Positions 10,945 to 23,600 of a DNA stretch of 64,000 nt are shown in pieces. Source of the stretch: Iphione sp. A-MEVVRFRX5 (lineage: Eukaryota). Positions within the stretch are counted from its first letter, which is position 1, and the number at the start of each line of letters is the position of its first letter. The notes beneath the pieces are model-generated. The model saw only the letters and a list, made by a program, of their open reading frames with translations. It made no database searches and was not told the origin of the DNA. Made by a program: the position numbers and the translations under genes. The stretch covers positions 59,210,001 through 59,274,000 of the forward strand of contig OZ320316.1 of assembly GCA_976226885.1 (NCBI GenBank), written 5' to 3'.

Positions 10945-11082
10945 GTGTCCTTAAGCCCCCTGTCTTTCAGATGAGTGCCCTTAAACCCCCTATCTCTGAG
11001 ATGTGTGTCCTTAGGCCCCCTATTTTTTAAATGGGTGTCCCTAGGTCCCCAATCTTTGAGATGGATGTCCTTAGGCCCCCTG
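10945..11082. repeat. 30-bp minisatellite, about 4.5 copies (GTGTCCTTAGGCCCCCTAT..TTGAGATG)
   Basis: Units start at 10945, 10975, 11005, 11035 and 11065. Confidence 0.85.
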
Positions 11083-11339
11083 ATGTGTGTAGGTGTATGT
11101 GTCTATGGATGTGTGTGTAATTGTATGTAGCATGTTGTATGCAATTGTTATCTTTTAAAAGTCAGCGTTTTCTTTAAAAAAGGGTGTGTTTTTAGTCACT
11201 CAAAATCAGTGTTTTCATGAAAAAAGGACCCTTTTTTCAGTTAAAAGTCAGTGAAAAGGGGGTAGTTTTGATGCTGTAGAATGAGCGCTAAAGTCCCCTT
11301 TTCAGGGTATGAGAGAACAGTTACATATAAGGTCTCCCC

Positions 11340-11452
11340 CTTTAAGTATGGTTGTGAGCGCATGGTCGCCTCACCATCGCCCCAGGTCGAGGCCGCAGGC
11401 CGAGATCGAGGGCGATGGTGAGGCGACCATGGGCAAGCAACCATACTTAAAG
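11340..11452. repeat. Fold-back palindrome / TTAA-flanked mini-element
   Basis: Arms 11340-11354/11438-11452 (15 bp) and 11361-11382/11410-11431 (22 bp) are perfect inverted repeats; core GGCC-GCA-GGCC; TTAA at 11342-11345 and 11447-11450. Confidence 0.8.
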
Positions 11453-13649
11453 TGTGTTCTGGCATGGCTTGGAATCATGAATCAGTAATGAATTAATATT
11501 AACACACCTTTAATTGTCTTTTGAAGCCATTTTAATGAATACTTCATACTGGGCATCATCCTCTCCCAAACAGGAAGTAAACAAACCTCCCTGCAATCTG
11601 ATTGGATGACAAAGGTCACATGATTAACATGGCGCTTTATTTACAAAATGTGAGTGTAATGTCGTTATCCGGTTCCTCCCACCTCATGAATATTAAGTAG
11701 GGAGCAATCCCAGAACTCCATCCAATATGGCTACCACCAACATGTAGTAATAAACATCACCTCTTTGTAACTAAGTTCTCAAGTGATCATTTCATACACA
11801 CACACACAACGAAGACAAGTGTGTACATGTGAAGTTGGGTAAAGATTCAACCTGTCACAGTAATAAACCCTGACCTGAGGTAAGGAAAACTTTGATATTA
11901 TTCCTGTTTAACCTGTGTGCTGTCTAAGAGAAGAAGATTCAGCCAGGTCAGTGATTTTAATTCTCTGTGCAAAGAAGAACTGTATCTGACATTTTATTTT
12001 GATTGAAGTATTGAAAATAAAACTGTCAAGATGAATCCCCAGGTAAATCTTCCAAACTACCCTGAATTCATTGTCACTGATGACCCTGAAATATCTCTGA
12101 AGTGGGAAGAATAGCTGGAAGGATTTGAAGCCATGCTTGCAGCCATGAGAGTGACAGAAGAAAAGGACAAGAGGAACATGATTATGCACTATATAGGGCC
12201 AGCAGCAAGAAAAGTGATCAAGAGGCTGGAGAACACAGGTGGTGAAGCAGAATATGTAGCCTTAAGAAATGCCCTGAATGGTCATTTTAAGCCAAAACTC
12301 AACAGAGTTTACTTGATGAATATGCTCGATCAAGTGCAACAACAGACAGGAGAGTCGATTGACAACTTTCTTGTGCGAGTAAAGGAAAAAGTTGCTGTCA
12401 TTGAGATTGACAAGTTGTCAAAAGAAGAAATCATTGACCTAATAACCTTCTCCCAGATGGTCAACAACTGTGTGAGTAAACATGTGAAAAAGAAGGCGAT
12501 CCGTGATGGTTTGAACTTAAATGATTTTATGCAGACCGCACGTGCAGCAGAGCGAACGGAATTCCAGATGAAGGACTTGGAAGCAGAGTCCACAACAAAT
12601 TCGACTTCCAGTTCAGCCAATGCCGTCACCGATGACAGGATCAGAGGTAGAAAAGCGCATCGTGGCAGATCACGGGGACGATCGCAGAGTCGAGGCCGCT
12701 CCAAGTCACAACACCACAGGAAGGACAAGAAGTGTTTCCGATGTGGAGGATCTTTCCCACATGAAGGTGACTGTCCAGCGAAGACTCAAACCTGTCGGAA
12801 ATGTCAGAGAGTTGGACATTATGAGAAGATGTGTCGCACGAAGACGTCAAAGAAGGGAAGTGTCAACCAAGTCTACAATGACAAATATGTCATGGTGCCC
12901 GCTGTTTCCATTGCATCCGTAGCGAGGCAGAATAAGAAAACAAAGACAGTGACACTACTGATGCATGACGAAGAAGTAGCACTACTGCTGGACACAGGAG
13001 CAGAAATTAACATTATTGGAGAGGAAACATTCCGCACCCTGAAGAACAGACGAAAGGACCTGAAGAGGCCAGACAAGAAATACTGTGGCTACGGACCAGA
13101 AGGTGAGCGAGTCGAGCTGCCTATTCTCGGGTACTTCAGTGAAGTAGTGAAAGCTCCACAAACAATGAAGATGACTCGTGCCGAGATCTATGTTCTAAAA
13201 GTTAAGGTGATGAATTTGCTAAGCTGCAAGACTGCAGAGAAGCTGGGACTAGTGTCATTTGCACACATCTATGAAGTCGGTGCCAACAACGTAGACCAGG
13301 TCGTGGAGGAATATGCGGACAGATTTGAAGGAATCGGGAAGATGAAAGAAGTCCAGTTACATCTAAGCATCAACAAAGAAGTGAAGCCGATAGCTCAGAA
13401 GGCAAGACGAGTACCATTCCATCTGAGAGAGAACGTTGAACAGGAGCTGGAACGTCTGAAAGAGATGGACATCATTGAAGATGCTAAAGGATCAACACCG
13501 TGGATCAGTCCAGTGGTGATCGTACATAAGCCAAATGGCCAGAAGAGGATCTGTCTTGATAGCAGGGCTATCAACACTGCGATCGAGAGGGAGAGACATC
13601 CAATCAGCACACTTGAAGAGCTGATCGTTACGAAAACGACGGGTTTGTT

Positions 13650-13965
13650 GCGCTACCACTTTAGGAATCAAATGTTCCAAAGCTCCTACTGACAGCAGGT
13701 ACATGGACCTCCCTTGAATTTTGAACAGGCATTTCCATTGGCTGTGGGGAGAGTCTGTGCCTTCCCATGATGGCTTGTGGCATGGAATTCTGTGATATTA
13801 ATATGATTGGGTTGCACTGTAAGTGTTTTGTCAGTGTTTTCACTGTGATACAGTTGCACTAAGTGAAAAATAACGATTAGATAAGTTTTTGATGAGTGAG
13901 GTTGAGGTCTCACTATGTAGAATATCACAGAACAGTGGTTTCGACTTTAATGTCTCCTCAGGCGC
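13650..13965 (-). ncRNA. Type I hammerhead ribozyme with a 273-nt insertion in loop III
   Basis: GCGC-CUGAGGA-GAC(AUUAAA)GUC-GAAA-CCACU (13965-13934) and AGUGG-U-A|GCGC (13660-13650): full core, stems I, II and III, GUA cleavage triplet. Confidence 0.75.
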
Positions 13966-14268
13966 TAGATTTCAATTCATTGTCACTCTCAGTGTTTACA
14001 GGTGGTAATATGAATATATAATAGCATTTTATCCGCTTGTTTAAGTGATCCGCTGTCAATATATTTCGCTTCTGCTGATGCCCATGTGGCCAGATTGCTC
14101 ACACCAAATCTAGGAGTTGAATTGGCAATATGGGTTCAGTGGAGTGTGGTAGGACCTAGTGCAGACTATTGAGGCTTCGTGCTACACAGACCATGTGGCG
14201 TGTTGAGATATATCAACAAAGCAATGGACACTCAATAGGTAACGACATGTGATTGTTGATAGCCACGG

Positions 14269-17124
14269 CTAGTCCAAAAGATTCAGGCCACTAGGAAAAA
14301 CCATTTTCAGTCGGTGTATCCAGCGGCGCTCCCTGGTTTCTCGGGCAGTTTTGTATTCCCGAGTTGCCGGATATTTGAGGAATTCCAGCACACTAATTTT
14401 TACGTCCTTCCAGCCCATGGTTGGGTGGGTTGTGGTTTGACTGAAGTGCCTTGCCACTGTTGTGTCCACATTTCTCTTGATGTCGGACTTATGATTCGCA
14501 AATCGCTCGGCAACCGTATTCTGAGTCTGGCCTACATATTGTATGCCGCAACTTTTGCATGTGATCAGATATATCAGATTGTTGCTTTGACAGTTTATAT
14601 TCTGATAGGTTATTATCGTGTCCCCCGTTGATCTAATGTTTGTATTACCAGTGCGGTCCAAGGCGGGACAAATTCTGCAACCTAAGGGATTTTTGCACTT
14701 GTGTCTGTTGATGGTTAATGATGTGATACTTCTGGGCCTATTGTACATCAGTGTATCTAGTGCATTGTCTGGTTTCTTGGGTATGTGTGGTAGTTTTGCA
14801 CGTACAAGATAGTCGGACAAGTTCTTGTTGCGACGTTTTCCGAATATGATTGTACTGTCTTGTAGATGGCGGGTAACTTTCGATTTACCCAAAGTGTCCC
14901 AATGTTTTTGTGTCAGTTCCCTGACTGGAGGGTTGGTAGGGTTGTGGGTGGTGATGTAGTAGAACTTATTCTTTGAGGTGGCAGTATTATTGATACGTTT
15001 TTCTTTCTGGGGTTTGAGGAGATCATCCCTATTTATGTTTGCAACTCGTGATAGGGACGTTAGAATTTCTTTGTCAGGATAACCCCGTCTTATCAAATGA
15101 CCACTCATTTTGATTGTGTTGAGGAGGAATTCCTCTGTGGTGGAGCATATTCTTCGTATTCGTAGGAATTGTGAATATGGGATCGAGTTTAGGCAGCTTT
15201 TTGGATGGCATGAGCTGTACATCAAGTAGTTGTGTGAGTCTGTAGGTTTGGAGTATATAGTGGTCTGTAAAGAACCACAGTTGTCTAGTATCACCTTGGT
15301 GTCTAAGAAGCTTATTTCTTTCGCTGAGTACTCTAGAGTGAATTTGATTGTAGAGTGGACAGAGTTCAAGTGCTGGACAAAGTTTCTAAGGTCAGCCTCT
15401 GAATGTGTCCAGATCATAAAGATGTCGTCAATGTACCTTTTCCACACAAGAGGTTGGAGTGGATAAGTATATACAAATTGTTCTTCAAAATGGCCCATAA
15501 AAAGGTTAGCGTATGATGGAGCCAGTTTCGTGCCCATAGCAGTGCCACCAACTTGTAAGTAGTGTTTGTCGTTAAATGTAAAGTTATTGCAAGTGAGGAC
15601 TAAGTGTAATAGTGTTAATACACTTGTGATAGTCGGATTCAAGTCTGTATTTCTGTGTTTCAATAACATATGTTTTGTGGCTGCGATGCCTTCAGTATTC
15701 CGAATGTTTGTATAAAGGCTGGTCACATCTAGAGTTGCTAGGTAGGCGCCTGGAGGGGCTGCAGAGATGTCTCTCAATATGCACAAGAAATCACTAGTGT
15801 CTTGTACATATGATGGTAGAAGCGGAACTAGGGGATTAATAGTGGTGTCTACTAGTTGGGAGATCTCAGTGGGGCAGTTGTTCGCCGAGACAATCGGTCT
15901 CCCTGGGGGTGGTATTTTACCCTTATGAATTTTTGGTAAAAGATAGAAGTTTGGTGTGCGGTCGTTGCAAGTTGTGAGATATCGTCCGACCTTCTCGCTC
16001 AATTCTTTGTTGTGGACCATATCTTTTACTGTATTGTTGACCACTTTGATATGTTTAGACGTTAAGTCGGAATTAGTTTCTCGATAGAATTTCGGATCAT
16101 TGAGTTGTCTTAGTCCTTCTTTTATATAGTCTTCTCTATTTAGGATAACTGTGGCTCGGCCTTTGTCGGCTTTCTTGATTACAATGCTTTTATTCTGAGA
16201 TAAAGAGCGGATAGCCTTGAACTCAGTTTCTGACAGATTCTTTTTTCTGGGGGGCCTGATGGGGTATTGTTCCAGATCTGATCTGATTTTGAAAAAGGTG
16301 TGCTCAAGTAAGGGCGGTCCCACAGGGTTCCAGTCACTTTTGAGTTTCAGTTTTGGGTTATCGAAAGGTTTAAAATTAGTAGGACTCGAAGTGTCGAGTG
16401 GTCTATTGTCATTGACATGGCAGCCTTCTTTATGGAAAAATATCGACCTTCTTACCGACGTGTGGAAGTGATCTAGGTCCTCTGAGAGTTCATCTAGATC
16501 AGGTCTGCCAGGAGTCGGGACATAATTTAGACCTTTGGAAAGCAAACTGAGTTCAGCACTATCAAGCCTATAATCGGACAAATTTACAACACTGGTTTTG
16601 TTCAACAGGTCTATATTATTATCATTGTTAACATTCAAACAAAACAGGGTTTCAAACATGGCAATATAGGATTCAATATCCAAATCTGGCCAGTACGAAC
16701 AACAATGTGTCAGGTCAGTGTCATATGAAAAATCTTTTTGGTCAGTGTTCTGGCCTTGGCATGTGCTAGAAGAGAAGTTCTTAGTGATCACAGTCTTAAC
16801 TATTTTGTCAACATCAAATAGAGTGGTGATGTCTTTGTCAGATACGTCAGAGCTGAAATTAGAATGAGAGCATAGAACATTAACAGGGCAGTTACCAGAA
16901 TAGTCATTGGCCCACGAAGCTACTTCTTTGCGGATGAGCCCAGGATTTGGCCCATCATCCGTTTGAGTTCCTCGAATTCCCTCACGGTTGCCTGAGTGCG
17001 TCTGCGTGAGTTCCGCTGTCCCTCGCGTGGGGGTCTGCCCGCGTCGTCTTGTCGCCTGCGCTTGGACGATTTCCGATCGCAATGGGTGTTGTCCCTGGAG
17101 CGGGACCTGGACCTGGGGCGACGA
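14269..17124 (-). CDS. PLE RT + Cys-rich linker + GIY-YIG endonuclease (open frame; first in-frame ATG 16659)
   Basis: VVNLS..LSKGLNYVPTP, KADKG, LDVTSLYTNI, GTAMG..APSYANLFM, RYIDD; linker CKNPLGCRIC; LIYLITCKSCGIQYVGQT; no internal stop. Confidence 0.93.
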   Translation of the reverse strand, partial: SSPQVQVPLQGQHPLRSEIVQAQATRRRGQTPTRGTAELTQTHSGNREGIRGTQTDDGPNPGLIRKEVASWANDYSGNCPVNVLCSHSNFSSDVSDKDITTLFDVDKIVKTVITKNFSSSTCQGQNTDQKDFSYDTDLTHCCSYWPDLDIESYIAMFETLFCLNVNNDNNIDLLNKTSVVNLSDYRLDSAELSLLSKGLNYVPTPGRPDLDELSEDLDHFHTSVRRSIFFHKEGCHVNDNRPLDTSSPTNFKPFDNPKLKLKSDWNPVGPPLLEHTFFKIRSDLEQYPIRPPRKKNLSETEFKAIRSLSQNKSIVIKKADKGRATVILNREDYIKEGLRQLNDPKFYRETNSDLTSKHIKVVNNTVKDMVHNKELSEKVGRYLTTCNDRTPNFYLLPKIHKGKIPPPGRPIVSANNCPTEISQLVDTTINPLVPLLPSYVQDTSDFLCILRDISAAPPGAYLATLDVTSLYTNIRNTEGIAATKHMLLKHRNTDLNPTITSVLTLLHLVLTCNNFTFNDKHYLQVGGTAMGTKLAPSYANLFMGHFEEQFVYTYPLQPLVWKRYIDDIFMIWTHSEADLRNFVQHLNSVHSTIKFTLEYSAKEISFLDTKVILDNCGSLQTTIYSKPTDSHNYLMYSSCHPKSCLNSIPYSQFLRIRRICSTTEEFLLNTIKMSGHLIRRGYPDKEILTSLSRVANINRDDLLKPQKEKRINNTATSKNKFYYITTHNPTNPPVRELTQKHWDTLGKSKVTRHLQDSTIIFGKRRNKNLSDYLVRAKLPHIPKKPDNALDTLMYNRPRSITSLTINRHKCKNPLGCRICPALDRTGNTNIRSTGDTIITYQNINCQSNNLIYLITCKSCGIQYVGQTQNTVAERFANHKSDIKRNVDTTVARHFSQTTTHPTMGWKDVKISVLEFLKYPATREYKTARETRERRWIHRLKMVFPSGLNLLD

Positions 17125-20100
17125 GCGAATCATAAGTCCGACATCAAGAGAAATGTGGACACAACAGTGGCAAGGCACTTCAGTCAAACCACAACCCACC
17201 CAACCATGGGCTGGAAGGACGTAAAAATTAGTGTGCTGGAATTCCTCAAATATCCGGCAACTCGGGAATACAAAACTGCCCGAGAAACCAGGGAGCGCCA
17301 CTGGATACACCGATTGAAAACGGTTTTTCCTAGTGGCCTGAATCTTTTGGACTAGCCGTGGCTATCAACAATCACATATGTCGTTACCTATGAAGAGCTG
17401 ATCGTTGAGATGAATGGAGCTCAGATTTTCTCCAAAATAGATCTCAACAAGGGTTACCATCAACTAGAGCTGGCAGAAGAGAGTCGCTACATCACCACGT
17501 TTGCAACGCATCAAGGACTCTACCGTTACAAACGACTGTGTTTCGGTATCAACTCTGCAGCCGAGATCTTCCAGAAAGCAGTCTCAGACATGTTACAAGG
17601 AATCAGTGGAGTGAAGAACGTGTCAGATGACATCATCATATATTCGAAGACACTGGAAGAACATCAGAAGACAGTCAAGGCGGTCCTGCAGCGCATGAGA
17701 GAAAACAACGTGACTGCTAACAAGGACAAATGCGAATTCTGCAAAGATGAAATTCAGTTTTTCGGACATGTTTTCTCCAAAGATGGTATCTCTCCAAGCG
17801 AAGATAAGATTTCTGCAGTGACCAGTCCAAGCCCTCCTCAGAATGCAGAAGAAGTCCGAAGTCTCCTCGGGATGGCACAGTATGTTGCAAGATTCATCCC
17901 AAATTACAGCATAACAGTTGCACCATTGAGACTCCTCACTCGAAAAGATGAGCCATGGAGATGGGGACAGGAGGAGATGAAAGCGTTTGAAGCACTGAAG
18001 GACAGCATGACAAATTGGAAGATGATCAGATATTTTGACATCAAACTTAAGACAGAACTAATCGTGGATGCTAGCCCATTTGGATTGGGAGCAATTTTGA
18101 CTCAGAAGACAGCAGATGATGAGAGTCGAGTGATCGAGTATGCAAGTCGAGCATTGACAGACACAGAGTCAAGGTACAGCCAAACAGAAAGAGAAGCACT
18201 TGGGATAGTGTGGGGCTGCGAACACTTCAATCACTACCTCCTAGGGGCAGACTTAAAGGTGATCACGGATCACAAGCCCTTGGAAGGCATCATGAATAAG
18301 CCGATGTCGAAGCCAACAGCCAGGCTTCAGAGACTGTGTCTACGCCTACAGCCGTACAAGTTGACAGTTGTCTATCAACCCGGAAAGTCAAACCCTGCTG
18401 ACTACCTGTCCAGACACCCGAAGAAGGATGATGAAGCATGTGATCCATCATGGCTGGACCTGCAAACAGAACAAGTCAGCATACATGCAGTACAATATTA
18501 TAGCATGCATGGAAGACACAGTATCTCCAGAGAAGAACTCGAGAAAGAGACAGCCAAAGATGAAGTCCTGCAGCGAGTTATGCAATGTATCGCATCACAA
18601 AGATGGCATGAGTTGGATGTGACTTATCAGCCATACAGGAGGCTGAAAGAAGAAATGTCGGTATGTGATGGCTTGATATTGAAAGGGGACAGAGTCGTTC
18701 TACCAAAGAGCCTGCAACAGAGAGCAGTTGACGTCGCCCACTCAAGTCATCAAGGCATAGTGAAGACCAAGTCGTTGCTGCGTGAAACTGTCTGGTTCCC
18801 AGGAATAGACAAGCTGGTAGAAACCACAGTAGCCAACTGTCTCCCATGCCAGTCGGCAACTCTGAAGGTTGAGAGAGAACCGCTGCATGCCACAGAATTA
18901 CCGAAGAATCCGTGGACAGAAGTTTCTGTTGACTTCTGTGGACCTTTCAAGAGTGGAGAGTATCTGCTAGTAGTCATCGATGACTTACAGTCGCTTCCCT
19001 GAAGTGGAAATTGTGACCTTGACGTCAGCAACAGCAGTCATTCCAAGGCTTGACGCAATATTTGCCCGTCAAGGAATACCACTGACTGTCAAGTCTGACA
19101 ATGGACCGCCCTTCAACGGTGAAGACTTTGCAATGTGGGCCAGGTATGTGGGCTTCACTCACAGAAAAATCACACCCTTATGGCCACAGGCTAATGGAGA
19201 GGCGGAACGATTTACGAGGATGCTGGGAAAGGCAATACATGCCGCAATGATTGACAAAGGAAGCTGGAAGCAAGAGCTCTACACCTTCCTCCGGCACTAC
19301 AGAGCTACTCCACACAGCACGACAGGCATGTCTCCATCTGAAATGCTAAATGGAAGAAAGCTGAGAACAGAAGTGCCCATGAAGACGACAAAGAAGCAAG
19401 TCAGATTTCAAGACCAGGTGGAACTGGCAAGAAGGAAGGATGAGAGACTGAAGGGGCACATGAAGGAGCTCGCCGACAAGCGTCATCAGGCAAAAGAAAA
19501 TAACCTGGAAGTCAGAGACCGAGTTCTCGTGAGACAGCCAAGAGTGGACAAGCTGTCAACACCGTACAAGCCTGCACCATATGAGGTCATCAAGAAGAAT
19601 GGCAGCTTGATCACAGCAAGACAAGGTGATCATGTCATAACAAGAAATTCATCCTACATGAAGAGGATTGACAGACAGTGTGGTGACATGGGACCCACTG
19701 ATTCAGAGCTGGAAGCGCTCTTAGACGATCTGTCACCCTGCGATCAGAGCGAGACTAACACTGGCACTGATGTAACTGATGTGCCTACACAACATGCATC
19801 AAATTCACCCAAGCCGAGTGATGTCAGTTCCTGACGAGTGTCAGCAAGGACTAGGAGAACACCTAGTCACTTGAAAGACTTTATTGTATGGAAGTGAGTG
19901 CTGAGGACTCACTATGGGAGTGAAGTGCTAGTAACTGTTCTTCCCCAGATTAAATTCGAATATTGAAAAGTAAAGCTTGTTTATAAGCTAGAGTCACCAA
20001 AGAGACACTATGAACACATCTATTCATGAACATTCATTTAAAAGAGACTATCTTAAGCAAATGGTTTAAGAGCTTAAAGATATAGTTTGTTTCAAAAGAA

Positions 20101-20635
20101 GGGAGAGATGTAATGTCGTTATCCGGTTCCTCCCACCTCATGAATATTAAGTAGGGAGCAATCCCAGAACTCCATCCAATATGGCTACCACCAACATGTA
20201 GTAATAAACATCACCTCTTTGTAACTAAGTTCTCAAGTGATCATTTCATACACACACACACAACATAACAGTGAGTATATCAGCAGCACCATTCTGAAGA
20301 TTTAAGGTAATTTAAGAGAAAATATCACTTATAACATATGTAAAAATGTTTTTCATAGGTCATTTACTTAGTTTTGATGTATAGGCTACCCCATTTCTTC
20401 CATACTTCACTGTTTAAATGCTGAGTCGACCTGAGATCCACCATTTTGTTTAACCTTACTTCGAATTATTGACAATGAAGATGACAGCCAATATAAATCA
20501 GTATTACATATTAACCAATATTATTTCTTGTAATAAATTCTAACCATGTTTAGGTTGCATCAGACCAAAACATGCCTTTGGTAATACTAAAAGATAGGAC
20601 GATCATAGCCAGCCATGTTAGAACAATATACATAA

Positions 20636-23600
20636 TGTGGCGTGTCTACGGGGTGCAGTTGTGGAGTGTGTGGGAGTATGAGTGTGTGAGTGTGTCAGAC
20701 ATACTGGGGAAACTGTGTGGATAACAGTGTGCATGAATGTTCCATAGAGTTATTATATAAGGGGTGTGCTGGAGACAGGGGTTGCTCAGTTGCCTAGGAT
20801 ATTTCTTGGAATAAACACCTGTTGAAACTGGATATTGTGTGATGAGTCTTCATAGTGGGCATATGCTTAACATTGCTGGCAGTGGTGGGATTAGTGGGGT
20901 AGTGAGGAGTACAAAAGGCCCCCAAGGAGGGAAGACCAGTGGTCGCCAAGAGCAGAAGAGGAGTGTGGCCGCTATGGCAGATGCAAAGCTTGGAAGTGCA
21001 GGGAGTGGAGAAGAACCACACTGACCCTCTGTGGGAACCGGGGTAGCTCTGCACACCCCTACCACATGGCACAGCAGTGCATCTCAGCAGTGGCCTGAGG
21101 AGGGCCCTGAGGTGCCGTACCACTGCACAGGCCCTGTGGCAGAACAGAGGGCAAGGTGTCCTGGCATGATCACGGTACCTTGGAATGACATGGAGGACAC
21201 AGATTCTGATTCAGCAGAGGAAGAGGAAGCAACCAGGAGTGAAGAGGAGCCAGTGGCAGAACCCCAACGGGATGTTACAGTAACTGAGCCAGCACTCCTC
21301 CAAGGCCTGGCCCAAGCCATTATGCCAGGAGTATGAGAGGCAACTAAACAGAGAGGAGTGAAGTAATGTGCAGCAGAGCCTGAGTTGTATGATGACACGA
21401 CCCTGCTCATGGCTACATACATTTCAAGTGGGCATCGATGGCCAATACATGGGATGAGCATCAAAAAGTATTACAGATGAGAATCCACTTTCGTAAATCA
21501 GTGCTGGCAATCCTAAGCACGGTCACTGGGGGAGAAGATGATCCCCAAGCCTACTCTGAGTTAATCCAGCTGTTGAAGAGAAGATTCATACCTAAGAATC
21601 AAGCCGGGCTGTTCGAACAGCAACTGAAAAGTAAAAGGCAGGCAAAGGACGAGAACCTCAACCACTGGCAGAGGAAATCAAACGCCTGGTGCGCCAAGCC
21701 TATCCTGAGGTAGAAGGGTTGTGGCTGGACTGGATGTGTCAAGAATATTTTACGGGGGCCTTATGGGACAAACCTGTACCAAAACAGGTCACACTTTCCA
21801 AGACCTTCACATTCCATGGGGCCCTGTCCCAGGTCCTACTCATGGACTTGTATTACAGGTCGGAGAGGGGCACATCATGCTCAAGCTGCAACCCAGGAAG
21901 AGGCCTTAGAAGATCTGGTTGCAGCCACCAGTACCAGTCGAGAACCAGATCCTGCACCCTGGGAGAGGATAGAGATGTTGCAGTAGCTTCTAGCACCCAA
22001 GACCAAGGACAAGGAACCTAAGAAGAGCCGGCCTAAGAGTAAGAAGGGGAGGTGCCACTTCTACAATTAGGTGGAACATTTCAAGAGGGAGTGTGACAAA
22101 TTCAAAGCCTACCAGGCAGAAAATGCTAACCGACTCACCCCAAAGAAGTAGAGCGGGTGAAGAAGCACTCTGAGGGGGAGTGGCCAGAACATCTAGCAGC
22201 CCTTCATGTCACCAAAGTACCTAGCCACCAACTCCAGGCAGCGCAGAGCCAAGCGATAAAAGGCTGGATTCTTGCAGGTCATATACAGGGCATGGTGATG
22301 CAGTGGCTTATCAATACAGGTGCATCTGTGACCATCCTCTTATCTCAGGTCTTCCAGAAGCTTTCAGGGGTGGATTTATAACCCATTGGAGGGTGCATAC
22401 TCTGTACTGATGGCAAACCTTTGAAGGTACTGGGACAGGTCTACATCCATATATGGTTTGGCTCTGACTGACTACCCATATGGGCATGAGTCAGAGACAT
22501 TGATGCAGACGGATTACTCAGGCTCAATACCCCTCAGTGCTTGGGACGCTATGGTGCATATTGGCACAGGCCTGGTGGAGGAATCCTTGATGGTTTGCAC
22601 AGCAGGACATGTGACTTTTTTTTTTTTTTTTTTTTATTTCTTTATTTCACCTGATAGTTTTATACAAAATGATGTACGTTTTTCCAGGTTGGTTTCATAG
22701 TCGAAGTTGCTTCAGCGGCAGGGTGCTTGATGGTTATTTACATTGCATTAAGTGGCTTTACAGAACCCTTATAGTTACATTGAGATATGATGATTACAAA
22801 ACCAAGTTCGGTCGTATATTGTCATTAGTACGTCTATGTGGCTGTGGTAGCTTGATTGGGTGATCTCTGGCATATAATAGCTCAGGGTTTGTCAGACATT
22901 CGCCCAGACTCCCCTTTCTTAGTTTGATGGTTTAGTTGTATATGGCCTATGTCAGACATTAGCCCTGACAGGATTGCCATTAGTGCCCAGAGAACCACTG
23001 TATATTGCTAACCTTTCAATGCATAATGACATTCACGTGTTAGACCAGGTAGTTTCAAGGTAATTCAGTAGTGGCTATTACAATGTCGTAATCGTTCCAT
23101 ATTTGTGATCTGATGTCTTTAGTCTTCAGCCGAATGATAGGCGGGACTACACTCGGTATGCAGTCAGATTATTCCTTAACCCTTTGCTGAACTTTAAATA
23201 AGACATGGACTGTCCCGGGCAGGTGCCGGCAGGCCCTAGCTGTCAACATCATAGGGCACACTGGAAATGAAGTATTGATCAAACTAGAAGTACAACTTGA
23301 AACCAGATCAGAACTACAGGGTGTACCAACCCTGGTGCAACCCGGGAAGCAGAGTAGTAAAGTTCTAATGTGGAATTCAGGTGACTAGCCACTCAGAGTG
23401 TATGCAGGGACCCAGGTGGGTAACGCACACACAGTGGGGGAGTGTACCAAGGAAGAGCCTGACTGCTTGTGGCAGCAAGAGGCATGGCTGGGGGAAGAGC
23501 ATGATGAGGCCATCTGAGGTATGATGGCCACTCTGCCCACTGGATTTGATGACACCAACTGGGAGCTGGTATGACAACTTTTAGAGGAGTTCTGTGATGC

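Follow-up and report, generated by a model that had tools for sequence, protein, structure and literature searches.

A probable type I hammerhead ribozyme with helix III closed across a folded domain of about 270 nt in the 3′ UTR of a Penelope-like element of Iphione sp.

Introduction

Hammerhead ribozymes of animal Penelope-like elements (PLEs) are described as minimal: helix III is absent or limited to 1-2 bp of palindromic sequence, helix II is long and action is dimeric (PMC4209133, PMC7229834). The initial annotation of the locus analysed here took PLE hammerheads to be established and typically minimal and dimeric. It placed at the 3′ end of a PLE a complete hammerhead core whose partner strand lies 273 nt downstream. 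The question raised by this locus is whether two halves so far apart form a single ribozyme closed in cis, and what the sequence held between them is. The window is the whole stretch of Iphione DNA that was analysed, 64,000 nt in length; all coordinates refer to it.

Results

Sequence, coordinates and class of the motif

The motif is read on the minus strand. The coordinates, the spacing of 273 nt and the cut site (13654|13653) initially assigned to it are all exact. It is composed of the following segments.

13965-13962, minus strand: helix I 5′ strand GCGC; pairs with 13650-13653.
13961-13955, minus strand: catalytic core C3 to A9, CUGAGGA; from the sequence read.
13954-13943, minus strand: helix II hairpin GAC-AUUAAA-GUC (loop AUUAAA, 13951-13946); G10.1-C11.1 is the closing pair.
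13942-13939, minus strand: core G12 A13 A14 A15.1 (GAAA); invariant in alignment A2.
13938-13934, minus strand: helix III 5′ strand CCACU; pairs with 13656-13660.
13933-13661, minus strand: structured insert in helix III, 273 nt; from folds and hairpin recurrence.
13664-13678, minus strand: terminal hairpin; adjoins the helix III 3′ strand.
13660-13656, minus strand: helix III 3′ strand AGUGG; from sequence, pattern count and family scan.
13655 and 13654, minus strand: U16.1 and A17; predicted cleavage between 13654 and 13653.
13653-13650, minus strand: helix I 3′ strand GCGC; G-U wobbles in other copies.
13649-13630, minus strand: 3′ tail past helix I, reaching the element 3′ end; from the last block of alignment A2 and the Gypsy junction.

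The core positions of a hammerhead are all canonical: C3 U4 G5 A6 N7 G8 A9, G10.1-C11.1, G12 A13 A14, A15.1-U16.1 (A13939 paired with U13655) and H17=A (A13654). Three helices surround the core: helix I, 4 bp; helix II, 3 bp (G-C first); helix III, 5 bp plus the A-U pair. The segments follow the order I(5′)-core-II-GAAA-III(5′)...III(3′)-UH-I(3′), in which helix I is open and helices II and III are closed (type I). The predicted 3′ cleavage fragment, 24 nt long, comprises 13650-13653 and the tail 13630-13649. No loop-loop tertiary contact between helices I and II is evident, and the motif has no loop 1. Bases around helix I are conserved (A.A at position I.5 in 27/37 copies, UA 5′ of GCGC), and a U of loop II is near-invariant.

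No complement is found near the core. The sole partner is 273 nt away and makes a 6-bp helix III, so that the motif lies outside the definition of the minimal hammerheads. The initial reading, a core devoid of a local partner with the distal AGUGG-U-A-GCGC supplying stems III and I, is thus borne out. The Rfam hammerhead models give no match at the gathering score in the whole window and none up to E=10 in 11000-22000. These models cannot span a 273-nt insert; their silence marks a limit of detection and does not count against the defining chemistry, as foreseen in the suggestion that a large helix III closure escapes standard searches.

Odds of a chance match

The core pattern matches once in the window, versus 0.00 expected from 100 shuffles. 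The pattern AGTGGTHGCGC matches once on both strands of the 64 kb, versus 0.03 expected. On the right strand and within 330 nt, about 8e-5 distal matches are expected, a value close to the ~2e-4 estimated initially. When the nine stem bases were shuffled, an equally good partner was found within 900 nt in 0/2000 controls.

Host element and insertion site

The motif belongs to an insertion nested in another retroelement.

13630-17390, minus strand: PLE, whole insertion; Gypsy homology breaks at 13629/13630 and 17390/17391, with a 16-bp target-site duplication.
14269-17310, minus strand: PLE ORF, uninterrupted, 1013 codons; the true start is probably further downstream.
13614-13629: target-site duplication, 3′ copy, AACGATCAGCTCTTCA as read on the minus strand.
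17391-17406: target-site duplication, 5′ copy, 16 bp, AACGATCAGCTCTTCA.
17344-17390, minus strand: inverted fragment, ~47 nt, of the element's own ORF end (14235-14280), at the insertion 5′ end.
12133-13692 and 17410-19834, plus strand: Ty3/Gypsy host, gag-protease and RT-RNase H-integrase respectively; the PLE is nested between protease and RT.

The duplication was found by alignment with two uninterrupted Gypsy copies, and about 40 other Gypsy copies regain homology exactly at window position 13629. The 16-bp duplication and the Gypsy junction fix the element end at 13630; both ribozyme halves therefore lie inside the PLE, and the cut is indeed 24 nt from the element end, as had been proposed. 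The ORF protein carries Pfam RVT_1 (residues 513-655) and GIY-YIG (residues 911-999), which confirms the PLE context of a motif first described as being at a PLE 3′ end. It also carries a DKG motif and, ahead of the endonuclease, a CX5CX2C linker; these two features are named for the Neptune/Nematis clades (PMC8557442). Judged by these protein features, the element is a PLE with a C-terminal endonuclease of Neptune/Nematis style.

Neither flanking direct repeats (pLTRs) nor a partial tandem were found for the copy 13630-17390, the upstream repeat being absent; this copy thus has a single ribozyme. Solitary or 5′-truncated copies are common among PLEs (PMC4209133). [quoted passage not shown] A singleton with an intact 1013-codon frame and a perfect duplication suggests a very low-copy or recently arrived lineage.

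Several other features of the insertion and its surroundings were recorded. In a DNA search, the plus strand of 17344-17391 matches positions 1-46 of the 3′ UTR query at 96%; the inverted fragment 17344-17390 resembles a miniature of the inverted 5′-truncated copies described for PLEs. The Gypsy gag-protease frame runs 63 nt into the PLE and then meets a stop. The Gypsy flanks are 99-100% identical to about 40 other copies, and the Gypsy family is therefore young. Upstream of the Gypsy gag frame, 11350-11447 is a GC-rich near-perfect hairpin of ~98 nt; its matches to Rfam microRNA precursors are weak and sub-threshold (32.6 bits versus a gathering score of 500). A CGUCGU-like motif is found at 13636-13641, 13-18 nt past the predicted cut. 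It is conserved in alignment A2 just before the copies end, and may be where reverse transcription starts or what the endonuclease recognises.

Copies within the Iphione genome

A DNA search with the 3′ UTR and a core pattern search (106 genome matches versus 0 for the reversed control) gave 35 distinct copies. For each of them, the 1200 nt downstream of the core were scanned for a strand complementary to the copy's own helices III and I, with U and H between them. A partner (at least 8/9 pairs plus U and H) lies 262-310 nt downstream of GAAA in 33/35 copies; stray matches elsewhere, in ~1200 nt per locus, number only 5. The two copies that fail the scan have visibly decayed versions of the partner at the same place. 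An upstream partner, as in a type II or type III layout, was also sought over the whole loci and none was found.

The 33 sequences of alignment A2 have a mean column identity of 47%, and both halves of the ribozyme stand out as invariant islands. The core CUGANGA + GAA is the same in all of them. RNAalifold was run on these sequences (~390 columns) with no constraint; the consensus holds helices I, II and III only. Stem cells are paired at 97.9%, whereas a shift of the 3′ partner by 1-3 columns lowers this to 14-47%. The percentage paired is inflated: some of the copies were picked with a pattern in which the proximal half is fixed, and every copy had to pass the filter of at least 8/9 pairs. 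Two-sided changes number 8 cells versus 2.1 in shuffles, a count reached by 0/500 shuffles.

The limits of the helices are sharp. Helix I is exactly 4 bp: its four positions are paired in 35-37 of the 37 copies, two of the pairs vary (by G-U wobbles only) and the fifth position is A.A in 27/37. The three pairs of helix II are kept in 37/37 copies and its loop varies. Helix III is the A-U pair plus 5 bp; its outermost pair covaries (U-A 20, C-G 6, A-U 2, U-G 2). N7 is G, U or C. The pair A15.1-U16.1 is kept in 37/37 copies; H17 is A in 22, C in 14, U in 1 and G in 0. Most stem positions never vary within this genome. Neither the fixed distance nor the conservation of the distal strand nor the covariation of the outermost helix III pair was imposed by the choice of copies. 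Independent evidence thus comes from the constant position, from that outermost pair and from the loci found in other assemblies.

Related elements of the Iphione genome have 50-72% protein identity in the endonuclease region and 66-68% DNA identity in the RT. Elements at this RT identity keep identical ribozyme halves, which are thus better conserved than the RT gene. The PLE endonuclease region has at least 4671 first-look candidates in the genome. Several related families are arranged head-to-tail with a spacing of 5.4-5.7 kb (for example three units on contig C4 near 10.71 Mb).

Relatives in other assemblies and metagenomes

A search of public assemblies and metagenomes with the PLE protein gave 869 homologues at E<=1e-20. 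The flanking DNA was examined around eight of them. In four independent loci, with 44-47% protein identity, the ORF is followed on its own strand by a core 290-700 nt further on, and the partner lies far downstream. They are listed with the number of shuffled-stem controls that reach the score of the locus.

L096: helix I GUGU/ACAC; helix III CCGUG/CACGG; insert 247 nt; controls 41/2000.
L097: helix I GCAA/UUGC; helix III CCGAG/CUCGG; insert 203 nt; controls 13/2000.
L091: helix I (U)CCU/AGG; helix III CCGCU/AGCGG; insert 189 nt; controls 90/2000.
L092 (L093 identical): helix I CGGC/GCCG; helix III CCGUG/CACGG; insert 558 nt; controls 3/2000.

In these four loci, helices I and III show the compensatory changes of which the Iphione genome itself has few. 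Conservation and covariation of the distal strand AGUGGUAGCGC in other copies had been named at the outset as a check on the motif. Run here, this check was favourable: the strand is at 262-310 nt in 33/35 copies, the outermost pair is U-A, C-G or A-U, and stems elsewhere are complementary.

The contig of L090 ends before a partner could appear. No standard core was found at three fetched homologue loci (L089, L094, L095). At L089, a core with a 1-nt insertion is followed ~220 nt on by the distal strand GUGGUAGCGC; this locus looks like a decayed copy.

The same core pattern was used to scan metagenomes. Among the 68 loci obtained, the partner, when found, is 2-12 nt downstream or 24-30 nt upstream. 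The partner finder thus recovers the compact partners of ordinary hammerheads, which serves as a control on the method; the scan of metagenomes gave such ordinary compact hammerheads and no further relatives of the split form. An identical core, CUGAGGA GAC...GUC GAAA CCUGCGGA, is carried by seven long contigs (L099, L101, L126, L127, L141, L142, L148). No partner was found for it within 900 nt on either side at the threshold used. The metagenomic PLE RTs P0011, P0020, P0026, P0045 and P0063 are named 'peptide-methionine (R)-S-oxide reductase' by JGI; this label is either a propagated misannotation or the sign of a fused domain.

The helix III insert

When 13975 to 13630 is folded by MFE with no constraint, helices I, II and III all form. 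In this fold, helix III runs on into a 13-bp helix (13921-13933/13787-13799) and then into several hairpins. The MFE z-score of this RNA is only -1.1. The RNAalifold fold of the subfamily retains both the 13-bp extension and the hairpins, and some of the pairs are changed on both sides. Nearly all copies, as well as the loci of other assemblies, have a hairpin lying 0-3 nt ahead of the distal strand. Its stem differs between them: GGAA/UUCC, UGGGA/UCCCA, CAGAC/GUCUG, GAGCG/CGCUC and others. In the MFE folds of 37 sequences, helix III is kept in 21 and the whole junction in 6.

According to these predicted folds, the 273-nt insert is no loose loop: it is a conserved domain of several hairpins that stacks on helix III. 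The initial term 'loop III' is therefore kept only in part: a 273-nt insertion in helix III is indeed present, and MFE, RNAalifold and hairpin recurrence replace the loop by a conserved domain with several hairpins.

Two other identities of the insert were considered and rejected. In this copy the insert has GU...AG at its borders, as an intron would, but other subfamilies do not keep them (e.g. CCACC-AGGAAC). A coding insert is rejected because the 80-codon frame at 13686-13928 matches no Pfam entry and indels interrupt it in relatives.

Discussion

Comparison with known hammerheads

Four groups of hammerheads or hammerhead-like motifs resemble the Iphione motif in some respects and differ from it in others.

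The minimal hammerheads of animal PLEs (Cervera and de la Pena 2014, PMC4209133) share with it the type I order, a host PLE with RT and GIY-YIG, a short helix I (4-5 bp) with no clear loop 1 and a terminal non-coding site. They are contiguous over ~40-50 nt and their helix II has 6-8 bp, whereas that of the Iphione motif has 3 bp (PMC4209133). Their helix III is missing or has 1-2 bp with a palindromic loop; in Iphione it has 6 bp (A-U + 5) and is closed in cis over a domain of ~270 nt. Minimal hammerheads of animal Penelope-like elements are also said to be the subject of Lunse et al. 2017.

A discontinuous (split) hammerhead is found in the 3′ UTRs of rodent Clec2 lectin genes (Martick et al. 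2008, as summarised in PMC2920678). As in the Iphione motif, enzyme and substrate are on one transcript, hundreds of nt apart, in a 3′ UTR (PMC2920678). The halves are separated by 273 nt in the Iphione PLE and by 189-558 nt in its relatives, which is the two-halves layout of the Clec2 type. This likeness is one of layout only: there is no homology and a different helix is interrupted. In the Clec2 ribozyme of Martick et al. 2008, the substrate strand reportedly comes first and the long spacer closes helix I; the Iphione motif has the enzyme half ahead of the substrate strand and the spacer in helix III. Clec2 ribozymes are in a host mRNA and keep loop-loop tertiary contacts, whereas the Iphione motif is in a retroelement.

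The 'large helix III' hammerheads of fungal and protist PLEs (PMC4209133) are also monomer-competent type I forms with a stable helix III and no recognisable contacts between helices I and II. Their helices are compact hairpins and their hosts are telomeric elements that lack the endonuclease (PMC4209133). The inserts of Iphione and its relatives have multiple hairpins over 190-560 nt and are carried by animal-type elements with an endonuclease.

'HHR_core' and 'HHR_half_core' matches have been described in PLEs devoid of canonical hammerheads (Craig et al. 2021, PMC8557442). Like the Iphione motif, the HHR_core entries have a CUGANGA...GAAA core in the 3′ region of a PLE, outside the standard descriptors of stems and loops. 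They differ from it in that they belong to elements with an N-terminal endonuclease (Naiad/Chlamys) and in that their partner strand was not identified (PMC8557442).

The accessible literature was searched, and no comparable insertion in helix III is described there. The split helix III layout is a new structural variant of the known association between PLEs and hammerheads.

Limits on activity and alternative readings

The reading retained here is that a type I hammerhead fold is under selection in the PLE 3′ UTR, with helix III closed across a folded domain of ~270 nt; comparative sequence evidence makes it probable. It is drawn from the sequence, its conservation, the covariation of helices I and III in the Iphione genome and in other assemblies, thermodynamic compatibility and the place of the motif in the element. 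Three other readings were weighed.

In the first, the conserved junction is mainly a non-cleaving clamp that closes the 3′ UTR for recognition by the RT and endonuclease, in vivo cleavage being negligible. The DNA copy runs 24 nt past the cut site, and the insertion template was thus uncut. Helix I (4 bp) and helix II (3 bp) are both minimal. At physiological Mg2+, such minimal hammerheads cleave slowly. Those of PLEs have low in vitro activity (PMC4209133). For an Anolis PLE, ribozyme mutants had no effect on insertion in vitro, for which the ribozyme is thus dispensable, and no reads ended at the cut site (PMC11167929). The catalytic positions, however, are all invariant, including those that pairing does not need (CUGA-GA, GAA); H17 is never G in 37 copies, and the 11 unpaired bases of the core would be superfluous in a mere clamp. 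Moreover, related PLE hammerheads cleave in vitro (PMC4209133, PMC11167929). A clamp that leaves the RNA intact is, on balance, unlikely.

In the second, the halves assemble in trans or between tandem units, as do dimeric minimal hammerheads, and the spacing of 273 nt is incidental. Dimeric action has been proposed for animal PLE hammerheads (PMC4209133), and related Iphione families do form tandem arrays (spacing of 5.4-5.7 kb). An incidental spacing would not be held at 262-310 nt in 33/35 copies despite 47% identity between the halves. The insert has a fold of its own, in which one helix stacks on helix III and a hairpin adjoins the distal strand, and the cis junction is present in MFE folds. 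Helix III is neither palindromic nor missing, which makes a dimer unnecessary, and the copy 13630-17390 is solitary. Assembly in trans is very improbable.

The third, a decayed minimal hammerhead core with an accidental complementary 11-mer downstream, would draw on the fact that any one copy involves only 9 stem pairs plus U and H, and is ruled out by the shuffle controls (~8e-5 expected in the window, 0/2000 shuffled-stem controls equal to the observed match) and the family comparison (same distance in 33/35 copies, compensatory stems in other assemblies), its probability being negligible.

Proposed mechanism

For the type I fold closed in cis, the following steps are proposed. Transcription yields the enzyme half first (helix I 5′ strand, CUGANGA, helix II, GAAA) and, ~280 nt later, the substrate half, made up of the 3′ strand of helix III, U-H and the 3′ strand of helix I. 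As the substrate strand is made last, the junction can form in cis only once the whole 3′ domain has been transcribed and folded. Helix III being stable and closed in cis, a dimer would not be needed. Standard hammerhead transesterification would then occur 3′ of A13654. It would leave a 2′,3′-cyclic phosphate on the body of the element RNA and free a 3′ fragment of 24 nt plus any read-through. Such self-cleavage would process the transcripts of the element, either read-through or tandem; in tandem or repeat-flanked copies, the upstream ribozyme would set the 5′ end.

The DNA copy reaches 24 nt past the cut site, so the templating RNA was uncut there when reverse transcription began. Cleavage and templating would thus be alternative fates of one RNA at the 3′ copy.

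The inserted domain may be a functional module of the 3′ UTR, possibly bound by the RT, whose folding would control the assembly of the ribozyme. A more specific proposal is that the helix III domain is an RT-bound 3′ UTR module and that its folding, or the bound protein, allosterically gates the choice between the cut and use as a TPRT template with a start 24 nt past the cut. This proposal is speculative and unlikely. If true, it would provide a natural hammerhead gated by a protein or by folding, and split hammerheads may then be present in Penelope clades to which no canonical one has been assigned.

Significance

Hammerheads are known in PLEs, and those of animals have been described as minimal motifs whose folding requires a second copy. 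Closure in cis by a stable helix III would in principle allow elements to cleave as monomers. Descriptor and covariance searches limited in loop length under-count hammerheads and may mis-score Penelope lineages as having no ribozyme or a core only. The ribozyme wraps the 3′ UTR and its predicted cut is 24 nt before the end of the DNA copy, which makes RNA processing versus RT start testable with one construct.
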